A stretch of DNA of 64,000 nucleotides, from positions 124,001-188,000 of IMG/VR virus record IMGVR_UViG_3300005056_000001. The stretch is one strand, 5' to 3'. The translations under genes were made by a program, and so were the position numbers. Numbering within the stretch: the stretch's first letter is position 1; the number at the start of each line of letters is the position of its first letter. This document shows, in pieces, positions 11,679 to 64,000 of the stretch. The notes beneath the pieces are model-generated. The model saw only the letters and a list, made by a program, of their open reading frames with translations, did not search any database and had not been told where the DNA came from.

Positions 11679-12386
11679 ATGGAAAATAAAGAAAACATAT
11701 TCGCCCTGTTAAGAACTTGTGATGTTGCCAATATTAACCTAGCAATGGTATTGGACAAAGGGAATGGCGGAAATGTCTTTCGATACCTTGAGGATGATTT
11801 TAAGGAAATGTTAGACACAATCAAAAGAGAGAAGTCATTGGATACTGAATCTGTGTGGAGGTTTCTATTTAAATCGGTCGGATTGGTAGAGGATTATGGC
11901 AGTATAACATACATACCAAAAAATATTGGGCTGTTACAGAACCTTGAAATTGTTGCCATTAAACAGTGTAACATCGAAACTATTCCTGAATCGTTTTTTG
12001 AACTCAAAAATCTTACAGAAATAACTATTAGTTATTGCAATCTGAGAAGTATATCTGAAGGGTTTTCGTGCCTCACAAAATTAGATTATCTTAATTTAAG
12101 TGATAACAACATCGAACGCATACATCCGAAATTTAACGGCCTTAAAAAATTGGAATTTCTTAATTTGTCTAACAATAACATTAATCATATTCCTGATTGT
12201 ATCTATGAAATGTCTACGTTATGTACATTATTTTTGGGTAATAATAACATTACGACAATATCTAATAAAATAGAAAATTTGTCTTCGTTAATGTGCATAT
12301 CCTTGAGAGAAAACAACATAACAACACTTCCTACATCAACAAATGCTTTGGATGTGCTTAAACAATTTTTCACCATAACAGACTAA
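11679..12386 (+). CDS. leucine-rich repeat protein
   Basis: ~23-aa LxxLxLxxNxI repeats; N-cap LL....NINLA. Confidence 0.9.
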   Translation: MENKENIFALLRTCDVANINLAMVLDKGNGGNVFRYLEDDFKEMLDTIKREKSLDTESVWRFLFKSVGLVEDYGSITYIPKNIGLLQNLEIVAIKQCNIETIPESFFELKNLTEITISYCNLRSISEGFSCLTKLDYLNLSDNNIERIHPKFNGLKKLEFLNLSNNNINHIPDCIYEMSTLCTLFLGNNNITTISNKIENLSSLMCISLRENNITTLPTSTNALDVLKQFFTITD

Positions 12387-12389
12387 AAC

Positions 12390-12800
12390 ATGAAAAATAG
12401 AAACCAACCAAAAGACTTATACACAACACGAAGAAGGTTTGAAACTATAATGTACGACAAATTTGTCGAGGCCAACATGTATGACGACGACAAGGTAGAA
12501 GCAATCGAAGCCCATGCCATTGCCAAAAAGATTGAAAATGTTTACGAAGACATGGATGCCTATATAGAACAAGAAGATTACGAACTAACATTTTCCGAAG
12601 CAGTAGAAGTGTTATTCGAAAATGGGTGTGTGGTAATAAGAGGCGAAGACTTTAAAGAAGGCGTTTATATTTTCAGCCGTGACAGTGTGTTATACACAAA
12701 AGGTAAGGATTCTGCTCCGATATTGTTTGTGTTGTCTAGAAGAGACTTTGAACAAAAATGGAAATGTCTAAGCACGACCGAGGCATGGAAATTAAAATAG
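12390..12800 (+). CDS. hypothetical protein
   Basis: ORF adjacent to the LRR gene. Confidence 0.6.
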   Translation: MKNRNQPKDLYTTRRRFETIMYDKFVEANMYDDDKVEAIEAHAIAKKIENVYEDMDAYIEQEDYELTFSEAVEVLFENGCVVIRGEDFKEGVYIFSRDSVLYTKGKDSAPILFVLSRRDFEQKWKCLSTTEAWKLK

Positions 12801-12801
12801 T

Positions 12802-13317
12802 CTACAGACCTTCTTTATGTTTTTCCTTGGCCAATTGCTCGACCTCGGAGTCCTCATATCTTTTGTGTGACACAATGGTAATCTGTTCGACATCAAAAAC
12901 GGCATATTCATAGCCGATCTCGGGCTCTTCTTGATTAAGGGCAATAACCGCATCATAGTCACCCTTTCTTGCACGGGCTAGTACTTCCTTTGACATGTCG
13001 TCTGTCGTCCTGATAAACATAGGATTTTCGATGTCTAGGCGGCATGTGATTACACATGGCGTGAATGGTTCATAGTCCGTTGGTAGTCCGTCGGCAACTA
13101 ATTTATACATAAAGGCATTTACCTTGTCTATGAGTCTTGAGTATACCTGTGCGGTGTTTTTTGACGAAGAGAAATGTAGTGCAACCTCATCGGCTTTCTT
13201 GTCTGTTCGTTCTCCCTTAAATTCTGTGGAAAATTGGTCAAACACCTTTGGTGTTCCGTGATATACCTCCACGTTTTTGTACGGGACTTTTGGGATTGTT
13301 TCTACGATTCTTCTCAT
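12802..13317 (-). CDS. ART-PolyVal-like ADP-ribosyltransferase
   Basis: VYHGT...FDQF...HFSS....A..YS; LDIENP; YDAVI...E..YEYAVFD.EQI. Confidence 0.75.
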   Translation of the reverse strand: MRRIVETIPKVPYKNVEVYHGTPKVFDQFSTEFKGERTDKKADEVALHFSSSKNTAQVYSRLIDKVNAFMYKLVADGLPTDYEPFTPCVITCRLDIENPMFIRTTDDMSKEVLARARKGDYDAVIALNQEEPEIGYEYAVFDVEQITIVSHKRYEDSEVEQLAKEKHKEGL

Positions 13318-13318
13318 G

Positions 13319-13627
13319 TTATGCCTGTACTATTCTGATTGAAGAAAAATGTTTTGAGGTTGCCGTAAGCCGAACCAACTTTCTTTGGGTGGCAGTATAC
13401 TCGGCGATCTCAAAATCATAAAACTTTATACTGTCCTCGCCATCTGCAAACAGAATACTGTCCTCGCCAATCGAAATTTTAACATCATACATCTTTATAC
13501 AGGCACAGGCATTTCCTTCGATGGAGGCCTCTATTTTTAGGTTCTTTCCGACCAATTGTTCCATGTCTGCCACGGATTGGAGCGAGTCGTCTGTCAACCC
13601 CTCAACACTTTCGATTATGCGTCTCAT
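13319..13627 (-). CDS. putative internal head protein (MRRIIE N-terminus)
   Basis: start reassigned to 13627; GTACATA upstream. Confidence 0.55.
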   Translation of the reverse strand: MRRIIESVEGLTDDSLQSVADMEQLVGKNLKIEASIEGNACACIKMYDVKISIGEDSILFADGEDSIKFYDFEIAEYTATQRKLVRLTATSKHFSSIRIVQA

Positions 13628-13943
13628 TTTTAATGATTTTATTGTTAATATTGTATGTACCAATGTTCGGGAGGAGGTGTTCTTACTCTACAACCAATCT
13701 TGTATCTGTCGTTTAATGGCAGACAACGCCCAAGCATCACCACTCGAAATTTCAACATGGTGCTGTTTGATGTAGTCTTGAACCATTTTAGAACGCTCTT
13801 TAGTCCCTTTTTTAGACTTAATCACTGTATCGGTTTTTGTATTAACACCCTTCGATTTTTTCATATTTAATTATCTTTAATCTTTGCTAAAAAATGCCAC
13901 GTTTAGCTCCTTGGTACTTATGATTATATACAACATGGTCGTT

Positions 13944-13997
13944 TTTTAGCATACCCAACTATCGGGTTTTGACATTTATAGTTGGGTATGCTAAAAC
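13944..13997. terminator. long inverted repeat / terminator
   Basis: TTTTAGCATACCCAACTAT...ATAGTTGGGTATGCTAAAA. Confidence 0.6.
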
Positions 13998-14010
13998 ATA
14001 ATGTTTGTTA

Positions 14011-14364
14011 CTACTCTCTGAATAAGAATTTATATAGACGGTCTTTGAAAACAACATCCGTAAAAAGAGCTCGTGGTGAATCTTTACCTGTTATACTAAG
14101 AGCATTATAATCTATGTTAACAAGACCATTCAAGGATAACTTGATATCACCCCCACGTGTCTCAATCCATAACTTACCATTTTCTAATACTGCATAGACA
14201 GAAGCATCGGTTGTATATGAAAACACCTCGTCACTCTTTGATGGATTTGGTGAATTGTAAATAAAAATTCTCATTTCTCTTTTTGTGCCATTAATCTCTC
14301 TCAATAGCTCATTGAAATCCGTACTCCTTGTTGATTCGTTTAATGATTTATATACTCTTCTCAT
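14011..14364 (-). CDS. putative internal head protein (MRRVYKSLNE N-terminus)
   Basis: N-terminal motif shared with neighbours; GTGCATA upstream. Confidence 0.55.
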   Translation of the reverse strand: MRRVYKSLNESTRSTDFNELLREINGTKREMRIFIYNSPNPSKSDEVFSYTTDASVYAVLENGKLWIETRGGDIKLSLNGLVNIDYNALSITGKDSPRALFTDVVFKDRLYKFLFRE

Positions 14365-14453
14365 AATTATATTTTGTTGTTAACGTTATATGCACCATAA
14401 TTTAAACTATCGCACATGTACTATTGGTTGATTTATTCAAGGATAAAATCGTA

Positions 14454-14636
14454 TTACTCCTCAGATTTCTTTTTCTTCTTTTTCCTTTTAAGATATGCCT
14501 TGTGTGACACATCCCCAATATGGGCTGCAAAATCTCCGCTCCCCTTATCACTGTCGGATGTTGTTTTTGTGTTGCCTGTTGCAGTCGGGTTGGGTGATGT
14601 TATTTCACCAATCCCGACCAAACCTTCAGGAGCCAC
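14454..14636 (-). CDS. probable frameshifted C-terminal module of 14660..16669
   Basis: open in the -1 frame from the A9 run at 14669-14677. Confidence 0.45.
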   Translation of the reverse strand: MAPEGLVGIGEITSPNPTATGNTKTTSDSDKGSGDFAAHIGDVSHKAYLKRKKKKKKSEE

Positions 14637-14659
14637 GCTATCATAGCCACCATCTTCTT

Positions 14660-16669
14660 TTACTTTACTTTTTTTTTACTCTCGGGTTCCTCGTCTGTGT
14701 ATTCGTCCTCTACCTCATTCCAAAAGTCGTCAATCAAGTCCTTGGGAATTTTACCCACCGACCCATACTCTTTGTACTTTGGAGTCTTCAATTTTTTGTC
14801 AAGAAATGCCTGATATTCTTTTTGGGTACCTTCGTTTAATAGATTATTACTGTTAACGTATTTATTAATATCCTTAAGGGTTTCTATATTATTAACCTCA
14901 AAGGCATATCCCTCCCAAGATACCGCCCAAAATTGTTTTGTGTCTTTATCGTAATATAGGTATTTTAACAAGTACGCCTTTGCAATCCAAGGACTCATCT
15001 TGATTTTCTGCATCCCTTTTAAAATACGCTTGGCTTCTTTGTTTGGCGCAGCTTCCTTGACACTCTTCTTATTCATAGACTTCTTGGCAATCGCAATAAT
15101 AGCGGCATCATCAATATCAGGATTATCTTTTTTAATCCCTGCAATCATATCGTCTACTTTTTCTTGTTTGTAATTGTCGCCATGTATTTTTTTGTACATT
15201 TTAGTAATTGCTTGTTTTGCGTCGATGTCTTTGGCTTCGTTTTTACCTTTCTTCTCGGGTTCCTCGTCGGTGTATTCGTCCTCTACCTCATTCCAAAAGT
15301 CGTCAATCAAGTCCTTGGGAATTTTACCCACCGAGCCATACCCTTTGTACTTTGGAGTCTTCAATTTCTTGTCAAGAAATGCCTGATATTCTTTTTTTGT
15401 GCCTTCTGCAAACACCTCGTATCCGTCAATAATATCCAACATACTGTTTAGGTTTTCAATCAGTGCCTTTGGTAAAAGAGCAACCGAATTATACCCCATC
15501 AAACGGGCCTGTCGTTCTGCAATTTCGCCATATTCGGCAATTGCCTCATCAACTGTTTGGTTGGATGTGTTTTTGAGGCGGTTCATAATATTACGAATAT
15601 TCTTGAACGGAAGAGGAATTCGTATCACATCCACCATTTGTTCGGGATCAACAACATTTCCATAAATCCAAGAATGGTGTCCGTCCATTAGGCGGTCTTC
15701 GTGGTCAATAAAATATACACGGTCAAACGGGTCATATGTCTCGTCATGAACCATACCCTTAACCTTTTCAACATTAAATTCTTGTTGTGACGCCTTTAGA
15801 TTCTTGATCTTCATTCGACTTTTCTTGGCATCCCACTTAAACATCATGTGCTTAACCGTGGCAGGAATATCGTTTATCTGTGGAAGATAGTCTCGATTGT
15901 ATCCTAGGTTGTTGTTTTTTGCCTTGGTTACAAAGTTTTCGATTGATGTGGTGTGCATCCCTTTTGTGATGTCCAAAACACTGTCATCAAATACTTCCCA
16001 AATATTTTTCTTATTAGATTTCATTATTGTTGTTCTTTTATTTTCGTTTTTTGGCTTTAATAATCTTGAGAATATACCTAAAACACCGCTAGGTTTAATA
16101 TTTTTGTTGTTATTATACTTTCCTTTCCATAAACCAAGCCCACTGCTTCCATCAAAAACCATTACTGTATCATAGTCGGATCGTGTTACTACTAAATCCC
16201 CCATCTCAAACGAGACATGGGCATACACAATAGGGGCATAGTTATTATCGAAATAACTTTTAATTTCTCTAGCTATACTATCATACTTCTTGGGTAGTAG
16301 AACGCCATCCATTCCGTAATCGCTGTCGCTTAGGTCGATACCATACGATTCGTATATACGCATAACGTGATAATTTGCGGATGGCAGTCCTTTTATATGA
16401 AATATATCCACAATCTCTTGGTCGGTATCAATTATTGCTTTGGTGATACCTTCTGCGTCTTTTCTTACAATAAATCCCCCACCCTCACTAACATACCGCA
16501 GGATGAAGATATTATTAGCCTTTTTGGTAAACATTTCCTTCATAATCTTTCGCCAAACAACCTTTCCGAATTTAGGCAAATATTTATGATTTTTAGGAAA
16601 AATTTTATTGAGCTTTTTTTCAAGGTTAGGGTATCTACTAACACCCATCCTTTCGGTTATGTTTTTCAT
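14660..16669 (-). CDS. modular virion-core-like protein with a ParB/Srx-like domain and a duplicated ~51-aa module
   Basis: LKASQ.E...IDHEDRLMDGHHSW; EGTxKEYQAFLDKKLK...FWNEVEDEY twice. Confidence 0.7.
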   Translation of the reverse strand: MKNITERMGVSRYPNLEKKLNKIFPKNHKYLPKFGKVVWRKIMKEMFTKKANNIFILRYVSEGGGFIVRKDAEGITKAIIDTDQEIVDIFHIKGLPSANYHVMRIYESYGIDLSDSDYGMDGVLLPKKYDSIAREIKSYFDNNYAPIVYAHVSFEMGDLVVTRSDYDTVMVFDGSSGLGLWKGKYNNNKNIKPSGVLGIFSRLLKPKNENKRTTIMKSNKKNIWEVFDDSVLDITKGMHTTSIENFVTKAKNNNLGYNRDYLPQINDIPATVKHMMFKWDAKKSRMKIKNLKASQQEFNVEKVKGMVHDETYDPFDRVYFIDHEDRLMDGHHSWIYGNVVDPEQMVDVIRIPLPFKNIRNIMNRLKNTSNQTVDEAIAEYGEIAERQARLMGYNSVALLPKALIENLNSMLDIIDGYEVFAEGTKKEYQAFLDKKLKTPKYKGYGSVGKIPKDLIDDFWNEVEDEYTDEEPEKKGKNEAKDIDAKQAITKMYKKIHGDNYKQEKVDDMIAGIKKDNPDIDDAAIIAIAKKSMNKKSVKEAAPNKEAKRILKGMQKIKMSPWIAKAYLLKYLYYDKDTKQFWAVSWEGYAFEVNNIETLKDINKYVNSNNLLNEGTQKEYQAFLDKKLKTPKYKEYGSVGKIPKDLIDDFWNEVEDEYTDEEPESKKKVK
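14680..14833. repeat. ~154-bp direct repeat, copy 1
   Basis: near-identical to 15253-15406. Confidence 0.9.
15253..15406. repeat. ~154-bp direct repeat, copy 2
   Basis: near-identical to 14680-14833. Confidence 0.9.
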
Positions 16670-16791
16670 TATTGTTGTTTTAAGTATATTTTAATCTGAC
16701 TTGTAGTATGTACAAACCACAAGACCACGAACAACAAACGGTTTTTTGCGTTTATTAGATTAATACATCACCATTATTATATATAGAACAA

Positions 16792-17532
16792 ATGTTAGAC
16801 CATTATACACTTAAGAATATCCTTGTCTTTGACATCGAAACAGCATCAGGAGAAAAATCCTACAACGACCTAAGCGAGTCCATGAAAATGGCTTGGAAGC
16901 ATAAACATTCGCTCATAAAGGAAGAGATTAGTCTTGAGGCCTCCTACGAGAAGTTTGCGGCACTGTACCCCGAATTTGGACGGGTGGTGTGTATTTCGTG
17001 TGGTGTGACACTGAGCATGAAGGATGACGATGGAAAGCCTCGGAACAAGGTTATTACAGTTAAGTCGTTCTATGGGGATGACGAGGTAAAAATCCTGACA
17101 GATTTCGCAAAGACCATTACGGAATTTGACACCAAAAACCGTTCGACTTACCTATGTGGGCACAATATCAACAAGTTCGATATCCCGTTCCTTGCAAAGC
17201 GTATGGTTATTAATAGGCTTCCTATTCACAAAAAACTGTCCTTTGTTGGATTGCCACCATGGAAAATTGATTGGTGTATCGACACGATGGATGCATGGAA
17301 AATGGGCAATTTCCAAGGAGCAGAGTCTATTAAGGTATTGGCACCCGTTTTTGGAATCGAAACCCCAAAGGATGACATCGACGGGAGTATGGTATCAAAC
17401 GTTTTTTGGAATGAGAAGGGCGGAGATGTTCGCATTAAGGTATATTGTGTCAAGGACGTGATTGCAACCACCAAAATTTTGTTGGCAATGCGTAACGAGT
17501 CTATTGAATTGGAACATAATATCGTTAATTAG
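16792..17532 (+). CDS. DEDD 3'-5' exonuclease (PolB-exo-related)
   Basis: LVFDIET, GHNINKFDIPFL, YCVKDV. Confidence 0.88.
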   Translation: MLDHYTLKNILVFDIETASGEKSYNDLSESMKMAWKHKHSLIKEEISLEASYEKFAALYPEFGRVVCISCGVTLSMKDDDGKPRNKVITVKSFYGDDEVKILTDFAKTITEFDTKNRSTYLCGHNINKFDIPFLAKRMVINRLPIHKKLSFVGLPPWKIDWCIDTMDAWKMGNFQGAESIKVLAPVFGIETPKDDIDGSMVSNVFWNEKGGDVRIKVYCVKDVIATTKILLAMRNESIELEHNIVN

Positions 17533-17636
17533 GGCAATATGGTGTCTTAACAAAACATTAACATTTTTGGCTTAGGTGTTTTGATGTGGATGTTGTATAT
17601 TTGAATATAATTATTATTCACATAAAACTATTTATT

Positions 17637-17951
17637 ATGAATTTATTCAAACCAACACCCATTGGCACACAGATTACCCGCCACAAAAAAAATATCAAAC
17701 AACGCCAACTAGTACTTGACAACCTAGACGATAAACGGAAGCTTGTTGTAGACGAGTTTGATTTGTACAAAAACTCGAACAACACGTGCGTCAACACATT
17801 TAAAAAATTAGAGGCAAAGATGGAGAAAATCGACAAAAAAATCGGCAACACCGAGGAAAGGGTTGATGGTTTACATTATGAGTTGGCAACATTGCTTCAG
17901 ATGAAAAAAAAAGGGGTGGCGGCTGTCAGAAAAACCGACTACAAAAAATAA
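17637..17951 (+). CDS. coiled-coil hypothetical protein
   Basis: TATATTTG box at 17596-17603; terminator hairpin ~17960-17998. Confidence 0.6.
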   Translation: MNLFKPTPIGTQITRHKKNIKQRQLVLDNLDDKRKLVVDEFDLYKNSNNTCVNTFKKLEAKMEKIDKKIGNTEERVDGLHYELATLLQMKKKGVAAVRKTDYKK

Positions 17952-18061
17952 AAATACCACAAAAAAATACTGCCCCAAATCAGGGCGGTATTTTTTTGTT
18001 GGTATTAAGTCCATTATTGTCCTTTGTACATAGACTATTAACCAACAAAACACAAAAAACA

Positions 18062-18448
18062 ACGAGACGTGTTCAGAGAATAAATGAAGAAGCCTATGAG
18101 GTGGACAACAAATATAAATTACACACATCACTACAGGAGTTTATGGACGAGTGGTCTATAGATTATACATGGAAAGGTGCCCTTGAAATGATGCTTGGGA
18201 ATGGTCTTAGCCTGATTGAGATTAATGGCTATGGATTCGACCAAAAATTAATTGCTGACTATGAGGTTATGTATGTTAGACAGCGTTTTGATTTTCATAA
18301 AAGCAATGAACGGGGCGGGTCTGTATTCCAAACCTACAACAAGGAAGCCATTACAAGTGTCGCTTTTGACCACAAAGGCAGAGACCTTGTTTTCGTTATT
18401 GAGCTTAAAAATAAACTCACGATTACGGCATATGTAAACAAAGACTAG
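18062..18448 (+). CDS. putative internal head protein with an ACG start, (M)RRVQRINEE
   Basis: GTACATA at 18026, A-rich leader, ACG where related N-termini have ATG. Confidence 0.5.
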   Translation, partial: TRRVQRINEEAYEVDNKYKLHTSLQEFMDEWSIDYTWKGALEMMLGNGLSLIEINGYGFDQKLIADYEVMYVRQRFDFHKSNERGGSVFQTYNKEAITSVAFDHKGRDLVFVIELKNKLTITAYVNKD

Positions 18449-19194
18449 TCTAAACTAGTCTTTGTACTTTTTGTTTGTGGAATGTCGGACTTTATTTGGG
18501 TATAGGCTGCCGTGAATGCGGCAGTTAGACTTGGTATAAATGCCAATATTGTTGGTGCCAATGCTGCCGTGTACGGGCTAGGGCTTGCACTTGCTGCCAA
18601 CTTTGTTGCAAAACTAGTCAATTCGTTAACCACGGTTTGTATCAGATCAGCAATTGCATCATGCACATCGGCATTTTTTGTTCCTAGTGTTGCGGGTTCG
18701 GCAGACTTGTTTTCGGTTCCCAAGGAAACCATGTCCTTTAGGATGTGGACAACACGACCATCGGCTTCTAGTCGTATCGTGTTGTCCACTCCAATCATAA
18801 ATTTTGCCGTCTTAGAGCCTTTCTCTAGCTCAACCACAAATCCGTCAGACTCAAGATAGCGAACCGTAATAAAGCCGTCAGAACCGAAATCCTCTAGGTT
18901 TTTATACAAAAGAACTGCGGCAGATTCGTAATCTCCGTCAGGAATGGCGGCCTCGTTTATGTAGTGCCCCCCTGCATACCACACAGGATGATAAATACTG
19001 TTCTTGATAAACGTGCACACAACCTCGGAACCCACAGAAGGCAGGTCATGACGGTTGCGTGTCACATAACTAGGCAATGCCCAAGGGATTAAATCCTCGT
19101 CCAATTCATCATACCATCCACGAACCCGAACCTTTATGCGTCCAATCTTTTTTGGGTCTGTGATATCAATAACCTCGCCTAGAAACTCTTCCAT
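18445..19194 (-). CDS. gp5-like baseplate hub/spike protein (N-terminal OB fold)
   Basis: GEVIDITDPKKIGRIKVRV..LIPWA..LPSVGSEV..F. Confidence 0.85.
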   Translation of the reverse strand: MEEFLGEVIDITDPKKIGRIKVRVRGWYDELDEDLIPWALPSYVTRNRHDLPSVGSEVVCTFIKNSIYHPVWYAGGHYINEAAIPDGDYESAAVLLYKNLEDFGSDGFITVRYLESDGFVVELEKGSKTAKFMIGVDNTIRLEADGRVVHILKDMVSLGTENKSAEPATLGTKNADVHDAIADLIQTVVNELTSFATKLAASASPSPYTAALAPTILAFIPSLTAAFTAAYTQIKSDIPQTKSTKTSLD

Positions 19195-19217
19195 GAAATT
19201 TTACGATATGTACAAGA

Positions 19218-19916
19218 TTAAAAATCCTTTATTCGCTTTATGTATTTGTCACACACCGAGGTTTTTGATAAAGACTCCATAATGTCTTTGGTATTCTTGA
19301 ATGTATTTCCGTGTATTACTATAGTCCTTAGTCCCGAAACACGACCAATTGATTTCGGTAAAACATACAGTTCATTGTTTTGGAGCAAAAGTTCCTTTAG
19401 ATTGGTCAGGTTCCCGACCTCCTTTGGAAGTTCCCTGATACGGTTGTTGTCAACAAACAGATCCTCCAAGTTTTTAAGGTTGCAGATCTCGTTTGGTATT
19501 TCCTTCAGTAGGTTGTTTGAAAGAACCAATCTTTCTAGCGACTTTAAATTACCAATTTCCTTGGGCAGACTAGTGAGTCCGTTGTTTGCCAAATTAAGCC
19601 ATGTTAGATTGGGTAATCCACATAGATCAATTGGTATCTGTCCAAGGTGGTTTATTCTCAAATTAACATGCCTTAAATTTTTCAAATAACCTAGGCCACC
19701 CTTCAGGGTATCCAAAGAACAGCAAGACAAGTCCAAAACCGTTTCTTGTATCAACAGCTCAAAATCAATATTTATTAAGTTCATGAGCCATTCCAACTCA
19801 CCTCTGAGTGTATCAATAACCTTGGTACCCTTTGATTTGTCCAACTCTTCTGCCGACACAAAATCTCCAAGCAACAACATGTCGTATACTATTTTTTGGT
19901 CTTCTGTGAAATTCAT
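19218..19916 (-). CDS. leucine-rich repeat protein
   Basis: LPKEIGNLKSLERLVLSNNLL-type repeats. Confidence 0.92.
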   Translation of the reverse strand: MNFTEDQKIVYDMLLLGDFVSAEELDKSKGTKVIDTLRGELEWLMNLINIDFELLIQETVLDLSCCSLDTLKGGLGYLKNLRHVNLRINHLGQIPIDLCGLPNLTWLNLANNGLTSLPKEIGNLKSLERLVLSNNLLKEIPNEICNLKNLEDLFVDNNRIRELPKEVGNLTNLKELLLQNNELYVLPKSIGRVSGLRTIVIHGNTFKNTKDIMESLSKTSVCDKYIKRIKDF

Positions 19917-19917
19917 A

Positions 19918-20094: not shown

Positions 20095-20095
20095 T

Positions 20096-20395: not shown

Positions 20396-20405
20396 GTCCC
20401 TTGCT

Positions 20406-21686: not shown

Positions 21687-21687
21687 A

Positions 21688-40743: not shown

Positions 40744-41979
40744 ATGATCAAAAAAATAAAAACGGTAGAGTTGTTTGCAGGGGTTGGGGGTTTTAGATTG
40801 GGCTTGGAGAAGTACAATAAGTACGAAATCGTTTGGAGCAACCAATGGGAACCATCCACGAAAAAACAACATGCATCATTGGTGTATGAGGCAAGATTTG
40901 GAACCAAGAACCATTCAAATGAGGACATTGGTTGTGTCCAAACAGAAGAGATACCCGACCATGACCTCCTTGTTGGGGGTTTCCCTTGTCAGGACTATTC
41001 GGTTGCCACAACCCTAAACAATGCCAAGGGTTTGGTGGGGAAAAAGGGGGTTTTGTGGTGGTCTATCCATAGAATACTAAAGGAAAAGGCCCACAAACCA
41101 AAATACTTGTTGTTTGAGAATGTAGACCGACTCTTGAAGTCTCCGTCTAGCCAAAGAGGACGAGACTTTGGGGTTATGCTAAAGAGCCTGTCTGAACTAG
41201 GCTATGCCATTGAATGGCGTGTGGTGAATGCTGCCGAATATGGCATGCCACAAAGAAGACGTCGGGTGTTTTTTATAGGCTATCACAAATCAACAAGCAT
41301 TTATAAAAAACTCGAAAGTGCCAATAAGTCGGAATGGATTACAAAGGACGGCACAATCACAGGCGCATTTCCTGTCAATAGCCAAGAAGAGCCTTGTAAC
41401 AATTTTAAGTTGGATGGTAGCCTTGTCGAGATTACCGAGGACTTCAACAAAGGCGGAAAGATGTCTCCGTTTTTAAACTCGGGTGTGATGATAGACGGAA
41501 ACGTTTACACAACAAAGACTATACCTTTATATGATGGTCGGAAGACAGTCCTTAAAGACATCCTACAAAGCGAGGGTATCGAAGACGAATTCTATATCGA
41601 CGGTAATGACCACGACAGATGGAAATACCTGAAGGGCTCCAAAAAAGAACAACGAACAACCAAGGATGGTTTTACCTATAACTATACCGAAGGATCCATG
41701 ATTTTCCCTGATGCCTTAGACAATGCGTCTAGGACAATTATCACAGGAGAAGGAGGAAAGTCACCCTCACGATTTAAGCACGTCATAGAATCAAAAGAGG
41801 GCCTAAGACGATTGATACCTGTTGAACTAGAGCGATTGAATATGTTTCCTGACGACCACACCAAATTGGATGGTATTTCCAACACAAAACGTGCATTTTT
41901 TATGGGGAATGCCTTGGTTGTGGGAGTGATCGAGAAGTTGGGTGAGGTATTGTTTGAGCGTGTTGGTGGAGATTTGTAA
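40744..41979 (+). CDS. dcm: C5 cytosine DNA methyltransferase, M.Sau3AI-like (probable GATC specificity)
   Basis: ELFAGVGG, VWSNQWEPS, GGFPCQDYSVA, ENVDRLLKSP, QRRRR, MGNALVV. Confidence 0.92.
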   Translation: MIKKIKTVELFAGVGGFRLGLEKYNKYEIVWSNQWEPSTKKQHASLVYEARFGTKNHSNEDIGCVQTEEIPDHDLLVGGFPCQDYSVATTLNNAKGLVGKKGVLWWSIHRILKEKAHKPKYLLFENVDRLLKSPSSQRGRDFGVMLKSLSELGYAIEWRVVNAAEYGMPQRRRRVFFIGYHKSTSIYKKLESANKSEWITKDGTITGAFPVNSQEEPCNNFKLDGSLVEITEDFNKGGKMSPFLNSGVMIDGNVYTTKTIPLYDGRKTVLKDILQSEGIEDEFYIDGNDHDRWKYLKGSKKEQRTTKDGFTYNYTEGSMIFPDALDNASRTIITGEGGKSPSRFKHVIESKEGLRRLIPVELERLNMFPDDHTKLDGISNTKRAFFMGNALVVGVIEKLGEVLFERVGGDL

Positions 41980-53529: not shown

Positions 53530-54735
53530 TTGAAGAAAAACAAGACATATAAATACAGGTTATCCCCTAATGTTACACAAAGCATTATGCTGAATAAAAC
53601 ATTCGGTTGTGTGCGTGCATATTGGAATAATCTTGTTGCGACATTTAATTCGTATGATAAAGTAACTAATCCCAAGCCTTTATTTAATACAGGAAAGGAG
53701 TTTAGTGACGTTTTTGTTTACGCAAAGGAAGTATCTGCTGCATCACTACAGCAAAAGTTTCGTGATTTTTCTCAATTCAAAAATCAGTTCTTCAATAAAA
53801 AAAGGAAAAAGAAAATAGGAAGGCCAAGCTTTAAGAAAAAAGGTTTTGGAGATTCCTTTAGATTGCCCAACCAAAAAATCCGTATCAAGGATAACAAAAT
53901 TAGACTTGAAAAGATTGGTTGGGTTAAATTTGACAACCACAGACAATTGCCTGTGGATTCACGTGTCCTGTCAATAACAGTAAAGAAAGACAGTGTAGGA
54001 GATTATTTTGCTTCTGTCTGTTTTGAGTATGTATGGAAGCCCAAGATAAATAGAATGAACATTATAGAGTCAAAAAAGGAAGTATCTACTATAAAACCAA
54101 ATGTGGGCATCGACCTAGGACTTACCTATTTAGCCATCCTTTCGGATGGTACAGTATTCTTGAATCCTAAATATCTTAGAGAAAGCCAATCTAAGCTTAA
54201 AAAGTCACAAAGAATCCTTTCCCGAAAAATAAAAGGTAGTGTACGATGGAACAGGCAACGGATAAAGGTTGCCAAATTACACCGTAAGATTGTTCGTCAA
54301 CGTGATTGGTCACATCATAACATAACCACGTGGATAGCCGACAATTACAACAACGTAGGGATTGAAACGTTAAGTATACAAAACATGATGAAGAACAGGA
54401 AACTTTCTAAATCTTTTGCTGATACCTCACTAAGTAAATTTGTCAATATGCTTATTTATAAGGTAGATGATAGAGGCAACGAGGTAGTCAGACTAGGAAC
54501 GTTTGTTCCTTCGACAAAAGAATGTTCTTCCTGTTCACACCAACAGACCGTTGCGCTATCTGAAAGAACCTTTAAATGCGAATGCTGTGGATTTGCCATG
54601 GATAGGGACTTGAATGCAGCAATAAATATTAAGAAAAAGACCGTAGGAGTTAATGCGGTCATCGCCAATGGCGACAAACGAACACTGAGCAACAAGAAGT
54701 CTCTACACCCGAATGTGGGTGTAAAGCAGTTGTGA
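53530..54735 (+). CDS. tnpB: TnpB RNA-guided endonuclease (IS200/IS605, IS1341-type, no tnpA)
   Basis: YKYRLSPN..FGCVR..WN; GIDLG; IETL; CSSC/CECC; DRDLNAAINI. Confidence 0.95.
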   Translation: MKKNKTYKYRLSPNVTQSIMLNKTFGCVRAYWNNLVATFNSYDKVTNPKPLFNTGKEFSDVFVYAKEVSAASLQQKFRDFSQFKNQFFNKKRKKKIGRPSFKKKGFGDSFRLPNQKIRIKDNKIRLEKIGWVKFDNHRQLPVDSRVLSITVKKDSVGDYFASVCFEYVWKPKINRMNIIESKKEVSTIKPNVGIDLGLTYLAILSDGTVFLNPKYLRESQSKLKKSQRILSRKIKGSVRWNRQRIKVAKLHRKIVRQRDWSHHNITTWIADNYNNVGIETLSIQNMMKNRKLSKSFADTSLSKFVNMLIYKVDDRGNEVVRLGTFVPSTKECSSCSHQQTVALSERTFKCECCGFAMDRDLNAAINIKKKTVGVNAVIANGDKRTLSNKKSLHPNVGVKQL

Positions 54736-54815: not shown

Positions 54816-54838
54816 CAATTAACCATATCAAACAACAA

Positions 54839-55072: not shown

Positions 55073-55090
55073 TTTTTAATAAAAGACACA

Positions 55091-55663: not shown

Positions 55664-55736
55664 AATAAGGCAAAAAGGAAATATCATTATTTTGATATTT
55701 CCTTTTGTTTTTGTGTAATTTTCACTATATTGCAGA

Positions 55737-56702: not shown

Positions 56703-56704
56703 TC

Positions 56705-57762: not shown

Positions 57763-58187
57763 TGGAACAAACACTAGAAGAAATCGCAAGATCCGCAGTT
57801 GTCGAGGTAAAGGAGTACTTTCCTGTTACATTCACACGACTCAAAAGTTACGATTCACACATAAGACACATCACAAGCCTAGAAAGTGAAACGCTCGATG
57901 CTGACAGATTGAAATGTCTTAGATTAATCAGCAACATCTTGACCACACAACCATATCTTAGTTTCTTTATACAAGACCCTGAGTCTGAAATACCTGTTTT
58001 GTTTTCGGGTTGGGAGGTGGCTTTTGTGAATAAAGAAACTACCTACATAGCCAATGGCAATAATATACTGTCATTTGTTAATCTGAACACACTTTGTGTC
58101 TGTATGTCTATTGACGCATTTAGTAAAACCCATGTACATTCGCTTTTTGATATAACCCGAAAGTTTGAGCTTGAGATTTTGGGTTAA
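57762..58187 (+). CDS. hypothetical protein
   Basis: coupled ORF. Confidence 0.6.
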   Translation: MEQTLEEIARSAVVEVKEYFPVTFTRLKSYDSHIRHITSLESETLDADRLKCLRLISNILTTQPYLSFFIQDPESEIPVLFSGWEVAFVNKETTYIANGNNILSFVNLNTLCVCMSIDAFSKTHVHSLFDITRKFELEILG

Positions 58188-58230
58188 AAGGCGTTATTGT
58201 GGTAGAATTTTATAAAAAATAAACAACAAC

Positions 58231-58644
58231 ATGAAATTAAAGATTAAGATTCCGATCAAATTTGGCAACATCGCAATAACCAAAAACAGTATAAGCGGTG
58301 ACACCAATGACAGTTCTAATTGGGACTCGTTTTCGTTTCCTTTGCCTGAAGGGGATTGGTACATTGAAAGTAGTGATATGGGACACATTGTGTTGGTTAA
58401 CAAGACTCCTGTGTATGAATATATTGACATCAGAGTCAGAGCCGCACTAGACAGTGACGGTTCTGTGTTTAGACCCGAGAACCCAAGATTCATAGGAGAG
58501 CTTTGGTGGAAGGGTGGTTTGGTTCATACAACAGTCGATTCAGACACGAAAGACGAGGCCTACAAAAAAGTCTTGACACACATTAACTACGAGAATGAAC
58601 ATCTAGAATCAGGGATGTATTTACAGGATCCGAGCAACCAATAG
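58231..58644 (+). CDS. hypothetical protein
   Basis: ORF. Confidence 0.6.
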   Translation: MKLKIKIPIKFGNIAITKNSISGDTNDSSNWDSFSFPLPEGDWYIESSDMGHIVLVNKTPVYEYIDIRVRAALDSDGSVFRPENPRFIGELWWKGGLVHTTVDSDTKDEAYKKVLTHINYENEHLESGMYLQDPSNQ

Positions 58645-58718
58645 GAAGAGTCGGATTGTCCAAAAACATTTTTTGATTTTTCACTGAGTTTTGTTAATAC
58701 GTTTAAGCCAAAAAATAT

Positions 58719-58997
58719 ATGAATGCAAATTTTCACATAGAAGAGTATTGTAGTTCGACACCAACCTACGCTGTTCTAACAAACGAAGACTTGAAAAATT
58801 ATTACACCACAGACTTTTATAGCCCCGAGTCCGAAAAAGGTTATAACGATGAGGACTACTATAATACCAACAAGATCATAGACATTTATAGTCCTGAATC
58901 CGAGGTCGAAAAGGGTTATAACGAGTAGGATTCCCACAATGGCGACAAAATCATAGAAAGCTTTGCGGACTATGGAAGAAGAATGAATACAAATTAA
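58719..58997 (+). pseudogene. chimeric duplicate of fragments of 59006 and 59391, with an internal TAG
   Basis: MNxNFHIEEY start plus two YSPES..EKGYN copies. Confidence 0.65.
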
Positions 58998-59005
58998 CTA
59001 CGAGC

Positions 59006-59380
59006 ATGAATACAAATTTTCACATAGAAGAATATAACAATCCGAACCCAACCTACATTGTTCTAACCATGAGCTATGTAAGTTTTAGCGACTACTTGCC
59101 CGAGATTGCCAAGGTTTTAAATCTTAAAACCTTCAAGGGCACCGTTTTGTTTGATTTACTTTTGAATAATGGCAGACATCATAGATTTTATGATGTCGAG
59201 TTTTCCGATAAGACGTTTCAACTGTCCACATTTAAAAATATTAAACCAAATCAAGACCTCCTGAAATTCTGTGCAAACTTTTATATCAAAAATTTATCGT
59301 TGATTGATGATAGCCTTTTCCCTGAATCCGAAAACACCCTGATAAAAAATCATATTAAAGAGTATTCACAAACAATATAA
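59006..59380 (+). CDS. rnlB: RnlB/LsoB-family antitoxin, orphan
   Basis: IVLTMSY.S...L.EI...L....FKGTVLFDLLLNNG...RF. Confidence 0.78.
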   Translation: MNTNFHIEEYNNPNPTYIVLTMSYVSFSDYLPEIAKVLNLKTFKGTVLFDLLLNNGRHHRFYDVEFSDKTFQLSTFKNIKPNQDLLKFCANFYIKNLSLIDDSLFPESENTLIKNHIKEYSQTI

Positions 59381-59390
59381 ACAATAAATA

Positions 59391-59786
59391 ATGAGTAAAA
59401 AACGTGTAATGTACGGCGGTGTAGCCGATTGGACTGTAGCAAACAAGGAGATGTATGAACACTTGAGCAAAACAGTCGTTTCTATAAATTTCTTTGAGAT
59501 CGGAGCAGGGTCAGAGCTAGATTGGATTGTTGCCGCAGACATGAAATCTGCTAGAGAATGGCTAAAAAGAGAAAGTGGGAACACCAAAAGTAGGACAAAG
59601 CAGTTGTCCAATGATGTTTTGGACGACTATTACATCACAGACATTTATAGTCCCGAATCCGAGGCAGAAAAAGGTTATAACGAGGAAGACTACTTCCGTG
59701 GCTACAAAATCATAGAAAGCTTTGCGGACTATGGAAGACGTCTTAAGAATAGTTGTCCACATTTGATTGCGTCAACAAAAGAGTAA
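59391..59786 (+). CDS. hypothetical protein
   Basis: ORF. Confidence 0.65.
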   Translation: MSKKRVMYGGVADWTVANKEMYEHLSKTVVSINFFEIGAGSELDWIVAADMKSAREWLKRESGNTKSRTKQLSNDVLDDYYITDIYSPESEAEKGYNEEDYFRGYKIIESFADYGRRLKNSCPHLIASTKE

Positions 59787-59917
59787 TTAGCGATCTGCTT
59801 GTTTCATGAAATATGTGTATACACTTATTTTGTTACACAAGCATTCAACGTTTTTGAGTGTGTAAAGTTCCTGATTTTGCCAATGTTTTATATATGTGTC
59901 TTTATATAGACCAACAA

Positions 59918-59952
59918 AAATGCCCAATAATTATAATAATTATTGGGCATTT
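59918..59952. terminator. hairpin between convergent genes
   Basis: AAATGCCCAATAATTAT..ATAATTATTGGGCATTT. Confidence 0.7.
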
Positions 59953-59954
59953 GC

Positions 59955-60944
59955 TTATACATCCTTTAGTTGCTCCTTAATACTATCGGCCAGAAATTTG
60001 GCTAAATTGACAGGAACAGCATTCCCAATCATTTTATATCCTGTGGCAACTTTTTTGTAATGAAAAATAAAATCATCAGGAAATGTTTGTATCCGTGCAC
60101 ATTCTCTTACGCTTAGGCGTCTGTATAAATGTTCTTGTGTGGGTTCGAATATGCGCTTGTCACGCTCAATAGATACCATTTTTGGAGCCTGTGGATGTAT
60201 GGGGGCATGTCTTCCTCCTGCCTGAATAGTAAAGGACTGTTCGTTCCAACTTCTGACCCTGTTTCTTGACATATACATTGACGAAAAACCTCCGATCATA
60301 TATTCATGGTTGGGTACTTTGCACTGTCCGTTGCTATAATTCTTTTCTAGCGCAGCAAGGCTATTGTGTTGTAAGTCCGATATTGTCTCCTGTAGTGTTA
60401 TTTTCGGGAATGTAATGTCAGGAAATTTGAAATCGAAACCCAAATCTTTTCGGATGCCAATAAATATCACACGTTTTCTGTCTTGGGGAACATTGTAGTC
60501 GGATGCATTAAGGAGTTTGAATGATAGGTTATAACCAACACCCGCATTTTTTAACATTTCCTTTATGTTATCCAAGGCAGATTCGTGTTTTTTGAGCAAC
60601 ATACCACTCACATTTTCTGCCAAGAAGAATTTGGGTTGTTTGTCATTAAGGATTCTAATAAAGTCAAAGAACAACTGTCCTCTTTTGTCGTCCATACCCT
60701 TAAGACTACCTGCTTCGCTCCAACTTTGGCAGGGCGGGCCACCGATGATACCATCACAATCAGGAACCGCATCCGAGGTTATTTTTGTGATACTTCGTTT
60801 GTCCAATATGGTTTCGGGATGATTCTTTTCATAGGTTTCCCAAATATCCTTGTCATATTCGTTGGCCCAAATAACATCAAAGCCTGCCTTTTGGAATCCT
60901 AAATCCAATCCGCCTGCACCCGCAAAAAAAGAAACTACTTTCAT
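59955..60944 (-). CDS. C5 cytosine DNA methyltransferase, M.HaeIII-like (probable GGCC specificity)
   Basis: FAGAGG, GGPPCQSWSEAG, ENV, QDRKR, TRD MSRNRVR.W.E..FTIQA.GR...HPQAP. Confidence 0.93.
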   Translation of the reverse strand: MKVVSFFAGAGGLDLGFQKAGFDVIWANEYDKDIWETYEKNHPETILDKRSITKITSDAVPDCDGIIGGPPCQSWSEAGSLKGMDDKRGQLFFDFIRILNDKQPKFFLAENVSGMLLKKHESALDNIKEMLKNAGVGYNLSFKLLNASDYNVPQDRKRVIFIGIRKDLGFDFKFPDITFPKITLQETISDLQHNSLAALEKNYSNGQCKVPNHEYMIGGFSSMYMSRNRVRSWNEQSFTIQAGGRHAPIHPQAPKMVSIERDKRIFEPTQEHLYRRLSVRECARIQTFPDDFIFHYKKVATGYKMIGNAVPVNLAKFLADSIKEQLKDV

Positions 60945-61037
60945 TTGTATATATTTCGTTTTGTAATAAACATTGTTAAATTACAAAAATAAACAATTTT
61001 GTTTATATAATGAAATTATTGTGTGTATTTTTTAGTC

Positions 61038-61532
61038 CTAATCAATACCCTTAAACGGCTTGAAGTGTTCTGTTATAATAAGAAACTTTGACCTGCTGTT
61101 GTTTGCATAGCTTATCATGGCCGTCCATTTCATTTTGTTTGTCTCAAAGTCACGGCTTCCTTTTATTGTCTGTGACAGTGGCTTTACCTCAACAAGCCAT
61201 CTTTCGTCGTTATCTGTGTTGACCACAAAATCAATATAATAATTTCCTTGTTTGTAGCCCTTTATTTCATTGCCTCTTTTATATCCAACCGCAAATGGTT
61301 CCGAATCCCACGACACGACCTTGGCACACCTTTCGCACCATATCATAAATTTACGCTCAAGGGATGATCTGTATATCGGGCGATATTGACCAATGTATTT
61401 GTTCTTCAGGGGGAGTTGAAAGTATCCATTGTCGTACACAAGTTTTTTGTTTGGCTTGTTATTCCTCATACGGGCACCACTTTCTTGGGTGATTTCCCCG
61501 ATTATTATTTTTTGGGCGTTCTTGTTTTTCAT
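61038..61532 (-). CDS. T4 gp4-like head completion nuclease (TnsA-like PD-(D/E)XK)
   Basis: KYIG....IYRSSLERKFM.WC...W.SE...YYIDF...LVEVKP. Confidence 0.85.
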   Translation of the reverse strand: MKNKNAQKIIIGEITQESGARMRNNKPNKKLVYDNGYFQLPLKNKYIGQYRPIYRSSLERKFMIWCERCAKVVSWDSEPFAVGYKRGNEIKGYKQGNYYIDFVVNTDNDERWLVEVKPLSQTIKGSRDFETNKMKWTAMISYANNSRSKFLIITEHFKPFKGID

Positions 61533-61648
61533 GTGTTATATATTTAATTATGTACATAACCCTAAACAAAGTTTGGATATAATAAATATTGTCCTATCTT
61601 TGCAATTGAACACAAGGCCTTTATGGCTATTTTTTCACAAAATTTAGT

Positions 61649-62521
61649 ATGATGAGACATTTTAATAATGTATTCTTTTATCTATTTTTAATAGTTCCTT
61701 GTTTGGCAATGAACAGAACCGAAACAACACGTTCACAGGAAGTAAACCATACTACCTACCTACCACAAGCGACAGTAAGCCCAAAAAAGATTTGGGTAAT
61801 CAACAAATCCTCTGCGAAATATGAACACGTATACTCTCCTGATAGTGTGCACATCCGAACAGACGTTAATGTCGAATTTATTGACAGCACAAACAAAATA
61901 CGAATAATTACCAATGACCTAGACACCACATTTCTTGATATGTCCACAAGGTATGCAACAAGCAGAACCGTGACATATCCCGACGATAATGCCGCAAAAT
62001 TTTCCATGATTTGTGCCGAATTGGGGGGTTCTATATTAATCGACTACGACAAGGCACACACAGAGGCACTAATCATTTCGGCAAGTATGGAAAATAGGCT
62101 ATATGTGGATAGCGTGCACACCAACAAAGGAAAGACAGAGGTGTTTTGCAAGTCCTACATGAAGAGTCGTTATGGGGATGGTTCGTTCCAATCATTATAC
62201 ACCCCAAAACAATACTGTGCAATGGTCTGCAAGTCCTACAAGCAATTTGGGTATGGGCATAGCGTCAGAACCCGACAGACATACAAAAAATTGATCGGGC
62301 TTTGTGCTGTTTGGAATTCGATGCAAAATCCTGTACAGAAATTGACAGACATGGGCATGGTCGAGGCAAACATGATACTGAGCTATTGTCATGGTGGATA
62401 TATTTCACTTCATAGAGGACGTACATTGGATTTTTCTATGTTAAACACCGACAATATGAAAATGATAATCACGTCTTCCTATTATGGAATGTGTCTAAAT
62501 ACAGTCTTGGCACATGCATAG
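61649..62521 (+). CDS. putative exported protein
   Basis: N-terminal signal-like segment; TATCTTTG box at 61595. Confidence 0.6.
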   Translation: MMRHFNNVFFYLFLIVPCLAMNRTETTRSQEVNHTTYLPQATVSPKKIWVINKSSAKYEHVYSPDSVHIRTDVNVEFIDSTNKIRIITNDLDTTFLDMSTRYATSRTVTYPDDNAAKFSMICAELGGSILIDYDKAHTEALIISASMENRLYVDSVHTNKGKTEVFCKSYMKSRYGDGSFQSLYTPKQYCAMVCKSYKQFGYGHSVRTRQTYKKLIGLCAVWNSMQNPVQKLTDMGMVEANMILSYCHGGYISLHRGRTLDFSMLNTDNMKMIITSSYYGMCLNTVLAHA

Positions 62522-62621
62522 GCAGAAATATAATTTTAAAAACCCCAAACAATTTTTTGTTTGGGGTTTTTTTTGTATGTTTGTATACCCTAGATGATTT
62601 GGGGAACTTAAATCAATAAAA

Positions 62622-62900
62622 ATGAAAAAGGATTTTTATCTTATTAGAGAAGAATCACGACCATTCCAAGAATGTGGATATGACCTTATGGATGTCGTCT
62701 CGGCAACAAGCTACGAAGAGGTTGTGAAGAATTATATTGAGGAAGAATTTATATTTGGAGGCAAAATCGAGGTTTTAGAAAACACCAAGGAGGATTTTAA
62801 ATTTAACGTCTTACGGGATCGGTATATCTTTGACACCTTCTGTCTTGTAACACAAGACGAATATACCGAGTGTTATCAAAGACTAATCGAAGAATCATAG
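62622..62900 (+). CDS. hypothetical protein
   Basis: TATGTTTG box at 62576. Confidence 0.6.
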   Translation: MKKDFYLIREESRPFQECGYDLMDVVSATSYEEVVKNYIEEEFIFGGKIEVLENTKEDFKFNVLRDRYIFDTFCLVTQDEYTECYQRLIEES

Positions 62901-62902
62901 CC

Positions 62903-63847
62903 ATGGAACAAGAAAAGTTATTAAGACTTATCGAAACAGGACTTGATGTTAATATAGAATTGGCATTACAACTGTCCAAGGCGAACGGTATACCCATCGA
63001 CATGTCCGAATATAGGGAGGCACTGACTTGGTACCACGAACACGACATACATATAGGACACGACTTTCTTGATGTAGGCAACCTCTCTGTCAAAGACCTT
63101 TTAAGAAAAGTGCTATTGGTTAGAAGTATTAATATTCCATTAACCAACACAGACTCGTTGCCCAAGTGTATCCGAAGGTTCAAAAACCTTGTCACGTTGT
63201 CGGCATTCGGCAATGGCCTTGCGGAGTTACCCCAAGAAATTGGAGAGCTCGCAAACTTACAGGTATTATCCCTTGCCGACAACAAGCTGACATCATTGCC
63301 CGACACTATCGGAAGGTTAAGTGCTCTTAAATACCTAGACATAGACAACAATAATATTTCGGTACTACCTAGCACTATGAGAAATCTTGATGGTCTACTA
63401 GGAATCCGACTACTCGACAACGATTTTGAGCGGTTTCCTGACGTTCTCTGTGGGCTCAGAAACCTCCGTGAACTAAAAATGGGTCGCAATAAGATTGGGT
63501 CGATTCCAACAAAAATTGGGTTACTGACAAACCTCACAAGCCTTGACGTGTCTAATAATTGTATAAAAGAATTACCAAAGGAATTGTTTAACCTTGACAA
63601 ACTCAAGGTTTTGTCAGTATTTAACAATGAAATAAAAGAGCTCCCAAAAGAAATAGGAAGCCTTGAGTGTCTAGAAAAATTGTACCTGAGCAACAATCCA
63701 ATCGAATGTGTGCCAACAACGATAACCAATCTGACCAATCTTGACGAGTTTATTCTTCTTGGGTCAAACATGAACAAAGTAAGGCAGGCGCAAACAAGCG
63801 AATTACTATTGACGTTACCACATAAACCCGAATTCATAGTCTCCTAG
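62903..63847 (+). CDS. leucine-rich repeat protein
   Basis: about nine 23-aa repeats such as LPQEIGELANLQVLSLADNKL; N-cap LI....NIELALQL. Confidence 0.93.
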   Translation: MEQEKLLRLIETGLDVNIELALQLSKANGIPIDMSEYREALTWYHEHDIHIGHDFLDVGNLSVKDLLRKVLLVRSINIPLTNTDSLPKCIRRFKNLVTLSAFGNGLAELPQEIGELANLQVLSLADNKLTSLPDTIGRLSALKYLDIDNNNISVLPSTMRNLDGLLGIRLLDNDFERFPDVLCGLRNLRELKMGRNKIGSIPTKIGLLTNLTSLDVSNNCIKELPKELFNLDKLKVLSVFNNEIKELPKEIGSLECLEKLYLSNNPIECVPTTITNLTNLDEFILLGSNMNKVRQAQTSELLLTLPHKPEFIVS

Positions 63848-63854
63848 AAATATC

Positions 63855-64000
63855 ATGACAACAGAAACTAAAATACACATTACGATTACCGATCTATTTA
63901 CTTCTGCAATAGAAAGTAATATCATATCGGGCTATAAATTAATGGCAGCAAATGACACCGAAATCGACCTGTCTGATTATAGGGAAATTTATAATTGGCT
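63855..64000 (+). CDS. partial CDS, probable further LRR paralog (N-cap only)
   Basis: LF.S..ESNI..G..L..AN...IDLSDYRE..W matches the N-cap of 62903. Confidence 0.6.
   Translation, partial: MTTETKIHITITDLFTSAIESNIISGYKLMAANDTEIDLSDYREIYNW

Follow-up and report, generated by a model that had tools for sequence, protein, structure and literature searches.

LRR genes in the window and across the genome

The 64,000-nucleotide window analyzed here (positions 124001-188000 of the 368,109-bp IMG/VR record IMGVR_UViG_3300005056_000001, whose own positions are called genome coordinates below) encodes four members of a family of small leucine-rich repeat (LRR) proteins carried by a jumbo bacteriophage. 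The initial annotation had placed LRR genes at 11679, 19218 (-) and 62903 and a truncated one at 63855, and all four are indeed LRR proteins at these positions. The first (11679-12386, +) encodes 235 aa, an N-terminal cap (N-cap) followed by six 23-residue LRRs (Pfam LRR_8, 2.4e-21, LRR families only; spacing 23x5); its ATG lies at 11679, and the open frame opens earlier, at TTG 11637. The N-cap region of this gene (11679-11820, +), comprising the LL.T.D..NI.LA motif and the next helix, is supported by the cap alignment and by a match to the external cap model described below. The second gene (19218-19916, -) encodes 232 aa with six 23-residue LRRs behind a divergent N-terminal helical region (LRR_8, 2.5e-22; spacing 23x5). 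The third (62903-63847, +) is the longest of the complete genes at 314 aa; it has a four-helix N-cap (residues ~1-72, encoded at 62903-63118, + and supported by an AlphaFold2 (AF2) model of the cap alone), approximately ten 23-residue LRRs and a C-terminal helix (LRR_14, 2e-31; AF2). The fourth gene is cut by the window end, so that translation of 63855-64000 (+) yields only its first 48 codons, which belong to the N-cap; in the genome it is complete at 187855-188775, with 306 aa and nine LRRs.

The claim that the complete genes carry 23-aa repeats and no enzymatic domain is borne out by Pfam and by motif spacing. All three match LRR families alone, with LRR_8 E-values of 2e-21 to 5e-23 and scores above the Pfam cut-offs, and neither enzymatic nor other non-LRR Pfam domains were found in them. 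By motif count, the core motif recurs at exactly 23 residues over 6 units in the 11679 gene, 6 in the 19218 (-) gene and 9 in the 62903 gene. The PHROG families matched by the LRR proteins (phrog_6688, 21719 and 7816) are all of "unknown function" and the matches are confined to the repeats; the phrog_6688 match of the 11679 gene, for instance, covers the LRR part alone. Long antisense open frames lie over the LRR genes in the window (62803-63837, -, 344 aa; 19240-19689, +, 149 aa), and similar shadow frames that match LRR queries weakly are seen at other LRR loci. These are probably artefacts of the codon pattern of the repeat; a gene caller that favors the longest open reading frame (ORF) would take the wrong strand at 62803-63837.

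The initial count of at least four LRR genes was true but a large undercount, as the whole phage holds 29 LRR ORFs amounting to 22.7 kb, or 6.2% of the genome. Simple ORF calling, motif counting and phmmer with five seeds all converge on this number, and tblastn of the 62903 protein against its own genome returns 33 matches. Most of the ORFs follow one another on the same strand in tandem arrays, separated by anything from a few bases to a few dozen (genome 65-71, 73.6-75.4, 99.5-102.3, 108.7-110.5, 114.4-118.4, 186.9-188.8 and 212.9-214.6 kb), and single genes are found at genome 56.5, 135.6, 143.2, 191.4, 254.8 and 306.5 kb. The proteins are small and LRR-only, at ~190-375 aa with 5-12 LRRs. 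Membership of the LRR superfamily (LRR_8/LRR_4/LRR_14) is borne out by a unit consensus drawn from 184 units, which fall into two repeat classes: a 23-residue class in 17 of the 29 ORFs (LexLxLxxNxIxxLPxxIgxL, 101 units) and a class of strict 22-residue period in the other 12 (LexLxLxnNQLTTPPnLeGLVn, 83 units). The 22-residue class (genome 65045-71000, 99512-102320 and 108719-110526) also has a conserved C-terminal tail, roughly P(T/S)HPTAxIxI.

Some members depart from this plan. Two 22-residue-class genes outside the window (genome 100263-101050 and 109484-110526) each carry a frameshift within a repeat, at ~100571 and ~110107, that breaks them into two overlapping ORFs; the frameshifts may reflect either real decay or assembly error in repetitive DNA; the other 27 frames are intact. 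At genome 73659-74498 (-) and 74517-75434 (-), a different N-terminal domain of ~80-110 residues replaces the helical cap. A cap-only ORF without repeats lies ~2.6 kb upstream of the window start (genome 120883-121380, +) and is either a remnant or a free-standing cap protein. The Bacteroidota -7 promoter motif TAnnTTTG is not enriched upstream of the LRR genes, being present at 2 of 28 in comparison to 8% of other genes.

The record itself is a complete marine bacteriophage of the T4-like jumbo kind, neither a bacterial fragment nor a giant eukaryotic virus, because it encodes a large terminase (Pfam Terminase_6N, E 4.5e-14; 45.7% identical to that of the Tenacibaculum jumbo phage pT24), a T4 Gp23-like capsid protein, a baseplate spike and a replication set. 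These genes, along with terminal repeats and a CheckV completeness of 100%, support the initial premise of a phage contig. The capsid and terminase module occupies genome 276-301 kb, and the replication set inside the window comprises a DinG/Rad3-like helicase, a clamp loader, a 5'-3' exonuclease and a 3'-5' exonuclease; Pfam Phage_sheath_1 has no match in the genome. The exact end repeat is 99 bp, which may reflect overlap left by the assembler in a circular or circularly permuted genome and not a physical terminal repeat. Genome guanine-cytosine (GC) content is 38.1%, the standard reading sufficed without an alternative genetic code, and four tRNA genes (Ser-TGA, Tyr-GTA, His-GTG and Ala-TGC) cluster at genome 50885-51704 (-), with none found within the window. 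No match was returned when 20 kb of the window was compared by megablast with 50,697 deposited phage genomes.

The N-terminal cap and its bacterial relatives

The N-cap is a conserved unit of ~70 residues and four helices at the extreme N-terminus, with the LRRs directly after it, and the motif KIxxLLxTGDxxNIELAxxLxKSNxIxLDLSxY..WL is common to 22 ORFs of both repeat classes. To avoid circularity, a hidden Markov model (HMM) was built from 26 non-phage sequences only and scored against all 1312 ORFs of the phage. The 62903 gene (E 2.8e-19), the 63855 gene as the whole protein (E 5.6e-12) and the 11679 gene at residues 1-32 (E 2.8e-6) were recovered. The shared N-cap that had been assigned to all four window genes therefore holds for these three; the 19218 (-) gene was not detected among the 1312 ORFs, aligns to the cap only loosely and at best begins with a very divergent version of it.

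The AF2 model of the 62903 protein, made with 32 family sequences, has a mean predicted local distance difference test score (pLDDT) of 94.9 and a predicted template modelling score of 0.91. It places helices at residues 3-11, 15-27, 35-47 and 63-71, followed by ten regular strand/helix LRR turns and a closing helix; the protein is thus predicted to be a standard curved LRR solenoid with a concave parallel beta-sheet. The cap modelled alone reaches a pLDDT of 88.6. No known fold or family emerged for this module, as Foldseek found nothing in the PDB at E<=0.001, an exhaustive VIA comparison against the PDB gave a best Z of 4.5, which is non-significant for helical bundles, and the ESM Atlas held no usable match or cluster. 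Likewise, the 22 cap sequences, which precede the LRRs, matched nothing in Pfam at E<=1, the F-box included.

Outside the phage, the cap is found in a narrow group of bacteria. Against 1.84 billion representative proteins a profile of the cap gave 101 matches at E<=0.001, almost all beginning at residue 1-30, and most of the longer ones carry LRRs. Few of them are named; among those that are is WP_052597083.1 from Aureispira sp. CCB-QB1, whose annotation reads only "leucine-rich repeat domain-containing protein" and which is encoded as well on the 7.3-Mb chromosome of Aureispira sp. CCB-E. Scanning one genome per prokaryote species with a tightened cap alignment, since the full 22-row alignment has no conserved stretch, gave four confirmed cap loci, all in Aureispira or in Saprospiraceae metagenome-assembled genomes, and these four genomes contain 8, 18, 25 and 3 cap matches over many contigs. 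At E<=1e-5 the cap occurs in only 4 of 101 sampled genomes of the family to which Aureispira belongs, and none of 300 other genomes of the same phylum (Bacteroidota) gave a match. A single cap match on a viral contig, 16 residues long and in a low-GC giant-virus bin, was disregarded.

The bacterial proteins resemble those of the phage. As in WP_052597083.1, the same cap motif (KIxxLIxTGDxxNIELAxQLAKS) is followed by 23-residue LRRs, and the genes are multi-copy, stand in tandem arrays and encode no signal peptide. They differ in being chromosomal, with ThiC, TMP-TENI, Omp85 and SpoU among the housekeeping genes around them, and in that some members reach 500-815 aa through duplication of the cap-LRR unit or in a cap-LRR-BRCT-LRR arrangement. 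Three tandem host LRR genes lie between thiamine-synthesis genes, and in two host genomes the order CarboxypepD_reg, a 470-aa protein, the LRR gene, a 306-aa protein, a 193-aa protein and Omp85 is conserved. No signal peptide was seen in phage or host proteins, judged by inspection of their N-termini; a cytoplasmic location is argued for because some host members contain BRCT and because the N-termini are hydrophilic.

Two further metagenomic contigs, which are either a bacterial island or phage, hold a cap-LRR gene between a defence-like block (PAPS_reduct, a Dnd-associated protein, an SMC-like ATPase and an SNF2 helicase) and a lysis-like block (Amidase_2, GH108 and small ORFs).

Aureispira-like Saprospiraceae, which are predatory, filamentous bacteria, are most likely the hosts of the phage because of the narrow distribution of the cap. 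The initial suggestion of cargo from an LRR-rich host is thereby sharpened, the cap being a lineage-specific module of Aureispira-like Saprospiraceae; the identity of only ~30-37% between phage and host copies speaks against a recent capture. In the literature searched, nothing relevant was found on Aureispira together with either phage or LRR.

Lineage, divergence and selection

The family is not a one-off insertion in a single genome. A 9.9-kb metagenomic contig encodes NA37-like and GmrSD_N-like genes of 46-49% identity, in the same order as at genome 104-108 kb, and continues with five tandem LRR genes, so that it is syntenic with genome 104-118 kb. A second IMG/VR record, 3300000976_000170 (137 kb), has a terminase 70% identical to that of this phage, four cap matches and approximately nine LRR ORFs. 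Because it is kept in both, the LRR family is a trait of this phage lineage; the more distantly related Tenacibaculum phage pT24 has no LRR genes. These relatives also bear on the reading in which host DNA was wrongly joined to a phage contig by chimeric assembly or contamination. The cap family is otherwise bacterial and record 3300000976_000170 is labelled "provirus" by IMG/VR, both of which would fit such a joining; however, the LRR genes are scattered over 12 places among the phage genes of the 368-kb record, the two ends of this record join through the 99-bp terminal repeat, the independent contig from another sample has the same synteny of phage genes and LRR array, and the identity to host copies is only ~30-37%. 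An origin in misassembled DNA is consequently considered exceedingly improbable.

The initial annotation held LRR expansions to be unusual in phages, and this is sustained by the deposited genomes: the 23-residue window protein matches only 5 of 50,697 phage records, and among the best 50 matches in a library of viral structures all are giant eukaryotic viruses and none is a phage. The 22-residue type matches four Listeria fragments. Only three other records of the 50,697 have several LRR matches (at 19, 22 and 5 places), namely the uncultured huge phage LR756500.1 (462 kb) and Leptospira LE1-like phage-plasmids. LR756500.1 holds at least seven LRR ORFs scattered over its genome but is without the N-cap, giving a single marginal cap match (E 0.006), and is at most distant kin, its helicase, the sole protein compared, being 27% identical. 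It is apparently a separate LRR expansion, such that the trait arose at least once more in huge phages. A broad comparative review of jumbo phages mentions LRR, leucine and ankyrin nowhere, and other mentions of phage LRRs in the literature concern single tail-module proteins.

The two repeat classes have different histories. Paralogs of the 22-residue class are 50-63% identical, form one phage-only clade (support of 100 in the Shimodaira-Hasegawa-like approximate likelihood ratio test, SH-aLRT) and differ by gaps of exactly one repeat unit; this clade and these whole-unit gaps show that the class expanded inside the phage through duplication of genes and the gain or loss of repeat units. Paralogs of the 23-residue class share only 30-40% identity with one another and ~30-37% with host copies, and it is because of this low phage-host identity that the genes are not considered a recent capture. 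A phylogeny against host LRRs had been proposed at the outset, and it recovers the phage-only clade but leaves donor and direction unplaced, as the tree of 98 cap-LRR sequences is essentially a star in which 60 of the 95 inner branches are unsupported. In the adjacent pair at genome 69031 and 70002, synonymous divergence (dS) is 0.31 in the cap versus 1.79 in the repeats, a difference suggestive of gene conversion in the cap.

The nonsynonymous to synonymous rate ratio (omega) in the cap region is 0.1-0.3, at saturated dS, and shows long-term purifying selection, which speaks against the copies being relics. This is of importance for the reading in which the genes are neutral or selfish cargo, repeat-rich sequences prone to duplication for which a jumbo genome has room, of no service to the phage and in many cases decaying. 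The two frameshifted copies (genome 100263-101050 and 109484-110526) and the cap-only ORF at 120883-121380 are what such decay would leave, yet 27 frames are intact, the low omega at saturated dS speaks of long-term constraint, the arrays are conserved in position in the related contig, a phage with no more than 70% terminase identity also has the family, and the LRR genes are tightly packed and co-directional with their neighbors. Idle cargo is therefore judged very unlikely. The initial annotation had also allowed that the genes might prove to be unexpressed relics, which given the intact frames, the omega values and the retention of the genes in related phages is unlikely for most copies, two being frameshifted.

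Proposed function in the infected cell

The explanation that best accounts for these data, and to which about half of our belief is given, is a family of cytoplasmic LRR binders shared with the host, amplified in a T4-like jumbo phage lineage and kept under purifying selection, with Aureispira-like bacteria as probable hosts. The family would be common to this lineage and to Aureispira-like Saprospiraceae; in the phage, it would have grown as genes duplicated in tandem and as entire repeat units were gained or lost, with purifying selection retaining the copies. The LRR proteins may act in the cytoplasm of the infected cell as protein-binding adaptors or decoys modelled on the N-cap-LRR proteins of the host, and in copying a host family could compete with or stand in for the host proteins. 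Their variable concave faces would bind different host proteins, and the conserved cap would keep the fold and possibly provide a common docking function. The targets may include defence proteins, as in the initial suggestion of binders against host immune proteins.

Comparison with known systems places the solenoid among familiar folds and leaves the cap without a counterpart. The nearest PDB structures to the 62903 model are Leptospira LRR proteins and SHOC2 (Foldseek E ~1e-17). The Leptospira proteins LIC10831, LIC11098 and LIC12759 (PDB 4u06, 4u08 and 4u09; E 1.8e-17 to 5e-16, <=35% identity) are the best structural matches and, like the phage proteins, are LRR-only with 23-residue repeats of the same subtype. 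Leptospira LRR-only proteins are exported, either to the surface or by secretion, and are without this N-cap, whereas the phage proteins have hydrophilic N-termini and no signal peptide. SHOC2, as seen in the SHOC2-MRAS-PP1C scaffold, is an LRR-only cytoplasmic adaptor that assembles other proteins and shares ~32% identity over ~240 solenoid residues at a root-mean-square deviation of ~2 A; it differs in being eukaryotic, in having 20 LRRs and in having a disordered N-terminal region in place of the helical cap. Among internalins, Listeria InlF (PDB 4fmz) is one of the structural matches and has 22-residue LRRs like the second phage class, but that class has its own C-terminal tail and the same N-cap as the 23-residue class. 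No Pfam domains corresponding to the internalin N-cap, Ig-like region or wall anchor were found, and no signal peptide by inspection. Similarly, among features of IpaH/SspH/YopM-type LRR effectors, the C-terminal NEL E3-ligase domain of IpaH and SspH was not found by Pfam, the phage proteins ending shortly after the last repeat.

The closest parallel in kind is among viruses of eukaryotes. Giant eukaryotic viruses characteristically have large paralog families of repeat proteins, which, to our knowledge, are hardly documented in phages. Klosneuvirus, Catovirus, Tupanvirus, Marseillevirus and entomopoxvirus likewise have paralog expansions of small LRR proteins; these differ in having eukaryotic hosts and, for several of the proteins, F-box domains, and no N-cap is known among them. 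Neither the LRR fold nor repeat-protein families of viruses are new in themselves; what is new is a 29-member LRR family in a bacteriophage, its unnamed N-terminal module and the tie to Aureispira-like bacteria.

This parallel raises a more specific reading of the cap. By analogy with F-box/PRANC adaptors, the N-cap would be more than a structural cap, namely a docking module that plugs interchangeable LRR "receptors" into one conserved machine of Aureispira-like cells, to which the phage would add approximately 27 receptors and so redirect the machine onto host proteins. We regard this as quite unlikely; if true, the repeat-protein families with which giant eukaryotic viruses and poxviruses hijack their hosts would for the first time have a counterpart in a bacteriophage.

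The main rival to host-shared cytoplasmic binders is that the LRR proteins are associated with the virion, either as modules of the baseplate or fibres that recognize the host or as passengers of the spike that are ejected into the cell. The case for this is made by the 19218 (-) gene, which precedes, by 23 nt and in the same direction, a gene for a baseplate spike-like protein with a gp5/VgrG-type OB domain (18445-19194, -; Pfam Phage_base_V 2.1e-7; phrog_37871, a baseplate protein, 1.4e-55), and by the jumbo phage Goslar, in which LRR/beta-helix domains on fibre proteins have a proposed role in host recognition. Most of the LRR genes, however, are far from the capsid and terminase module at 276-301 kb and are next to replication or otherwise uncharacterized genes, and Pfam shows the proteins, which are short, to consist of LRRs without any fibre, anchor or trimerisation domain. 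Against it too, the PHROG families matched are unannotated and cover only repeats, with no homology to annotated tail, fibre or baseplate families, and the host homologues are chromosomal, have no signal peptide by inspection and in some cases contain BRCT. A virion role for the family as a whole is accordingly thought unlikely. The spike protein itself has 249 aa with a C-terminal half rich in Ala, Ser and Thr, and its gene is sited amid replication genes, away from the structural module.

Several points weigh against the proposal of cytoplasmic binders shared with an Aureispira-like host. The position of the 19218 (-) gene beside the baseplate gene fits a virion role for that copy at least, and cap conservation could be purely structural. 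The PADLOC defence models assigned no family to five representative LRR proteins, and the sequencing runs that hold the region are three DNA runs (with 6-8% of sampled words) and no RNA run. The star-like tree names neither the donor nor the direction, number or order of transfers, and in nearly every pair of copies dS is saturated, at values >1 or undefined. The host assignment depends on a single protein family; a second host marker, the transposase of the phage, has no match in five Aureispira-like genomes.

The cap module is of further use in that it links the phage to a narrow bacterial clade and so serves host prediction, and the finding as a whole gives a protein family to name and model and a tractable system for studying the use of host-like binding scaffolds by phages. 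Two other features of the window may be mentioned. The transposase (53530-54735, +; 401 aa; phrog_506, E 9e-98) lies inside the phage genome, and two paralogous DNA methyltransferases are encoded at 40744-41979 (+) and 59955-60944 (-) (phrog_116, E 9e-67 and 4.5e-89), a pair which suggests that the phage modifies its own DNA.

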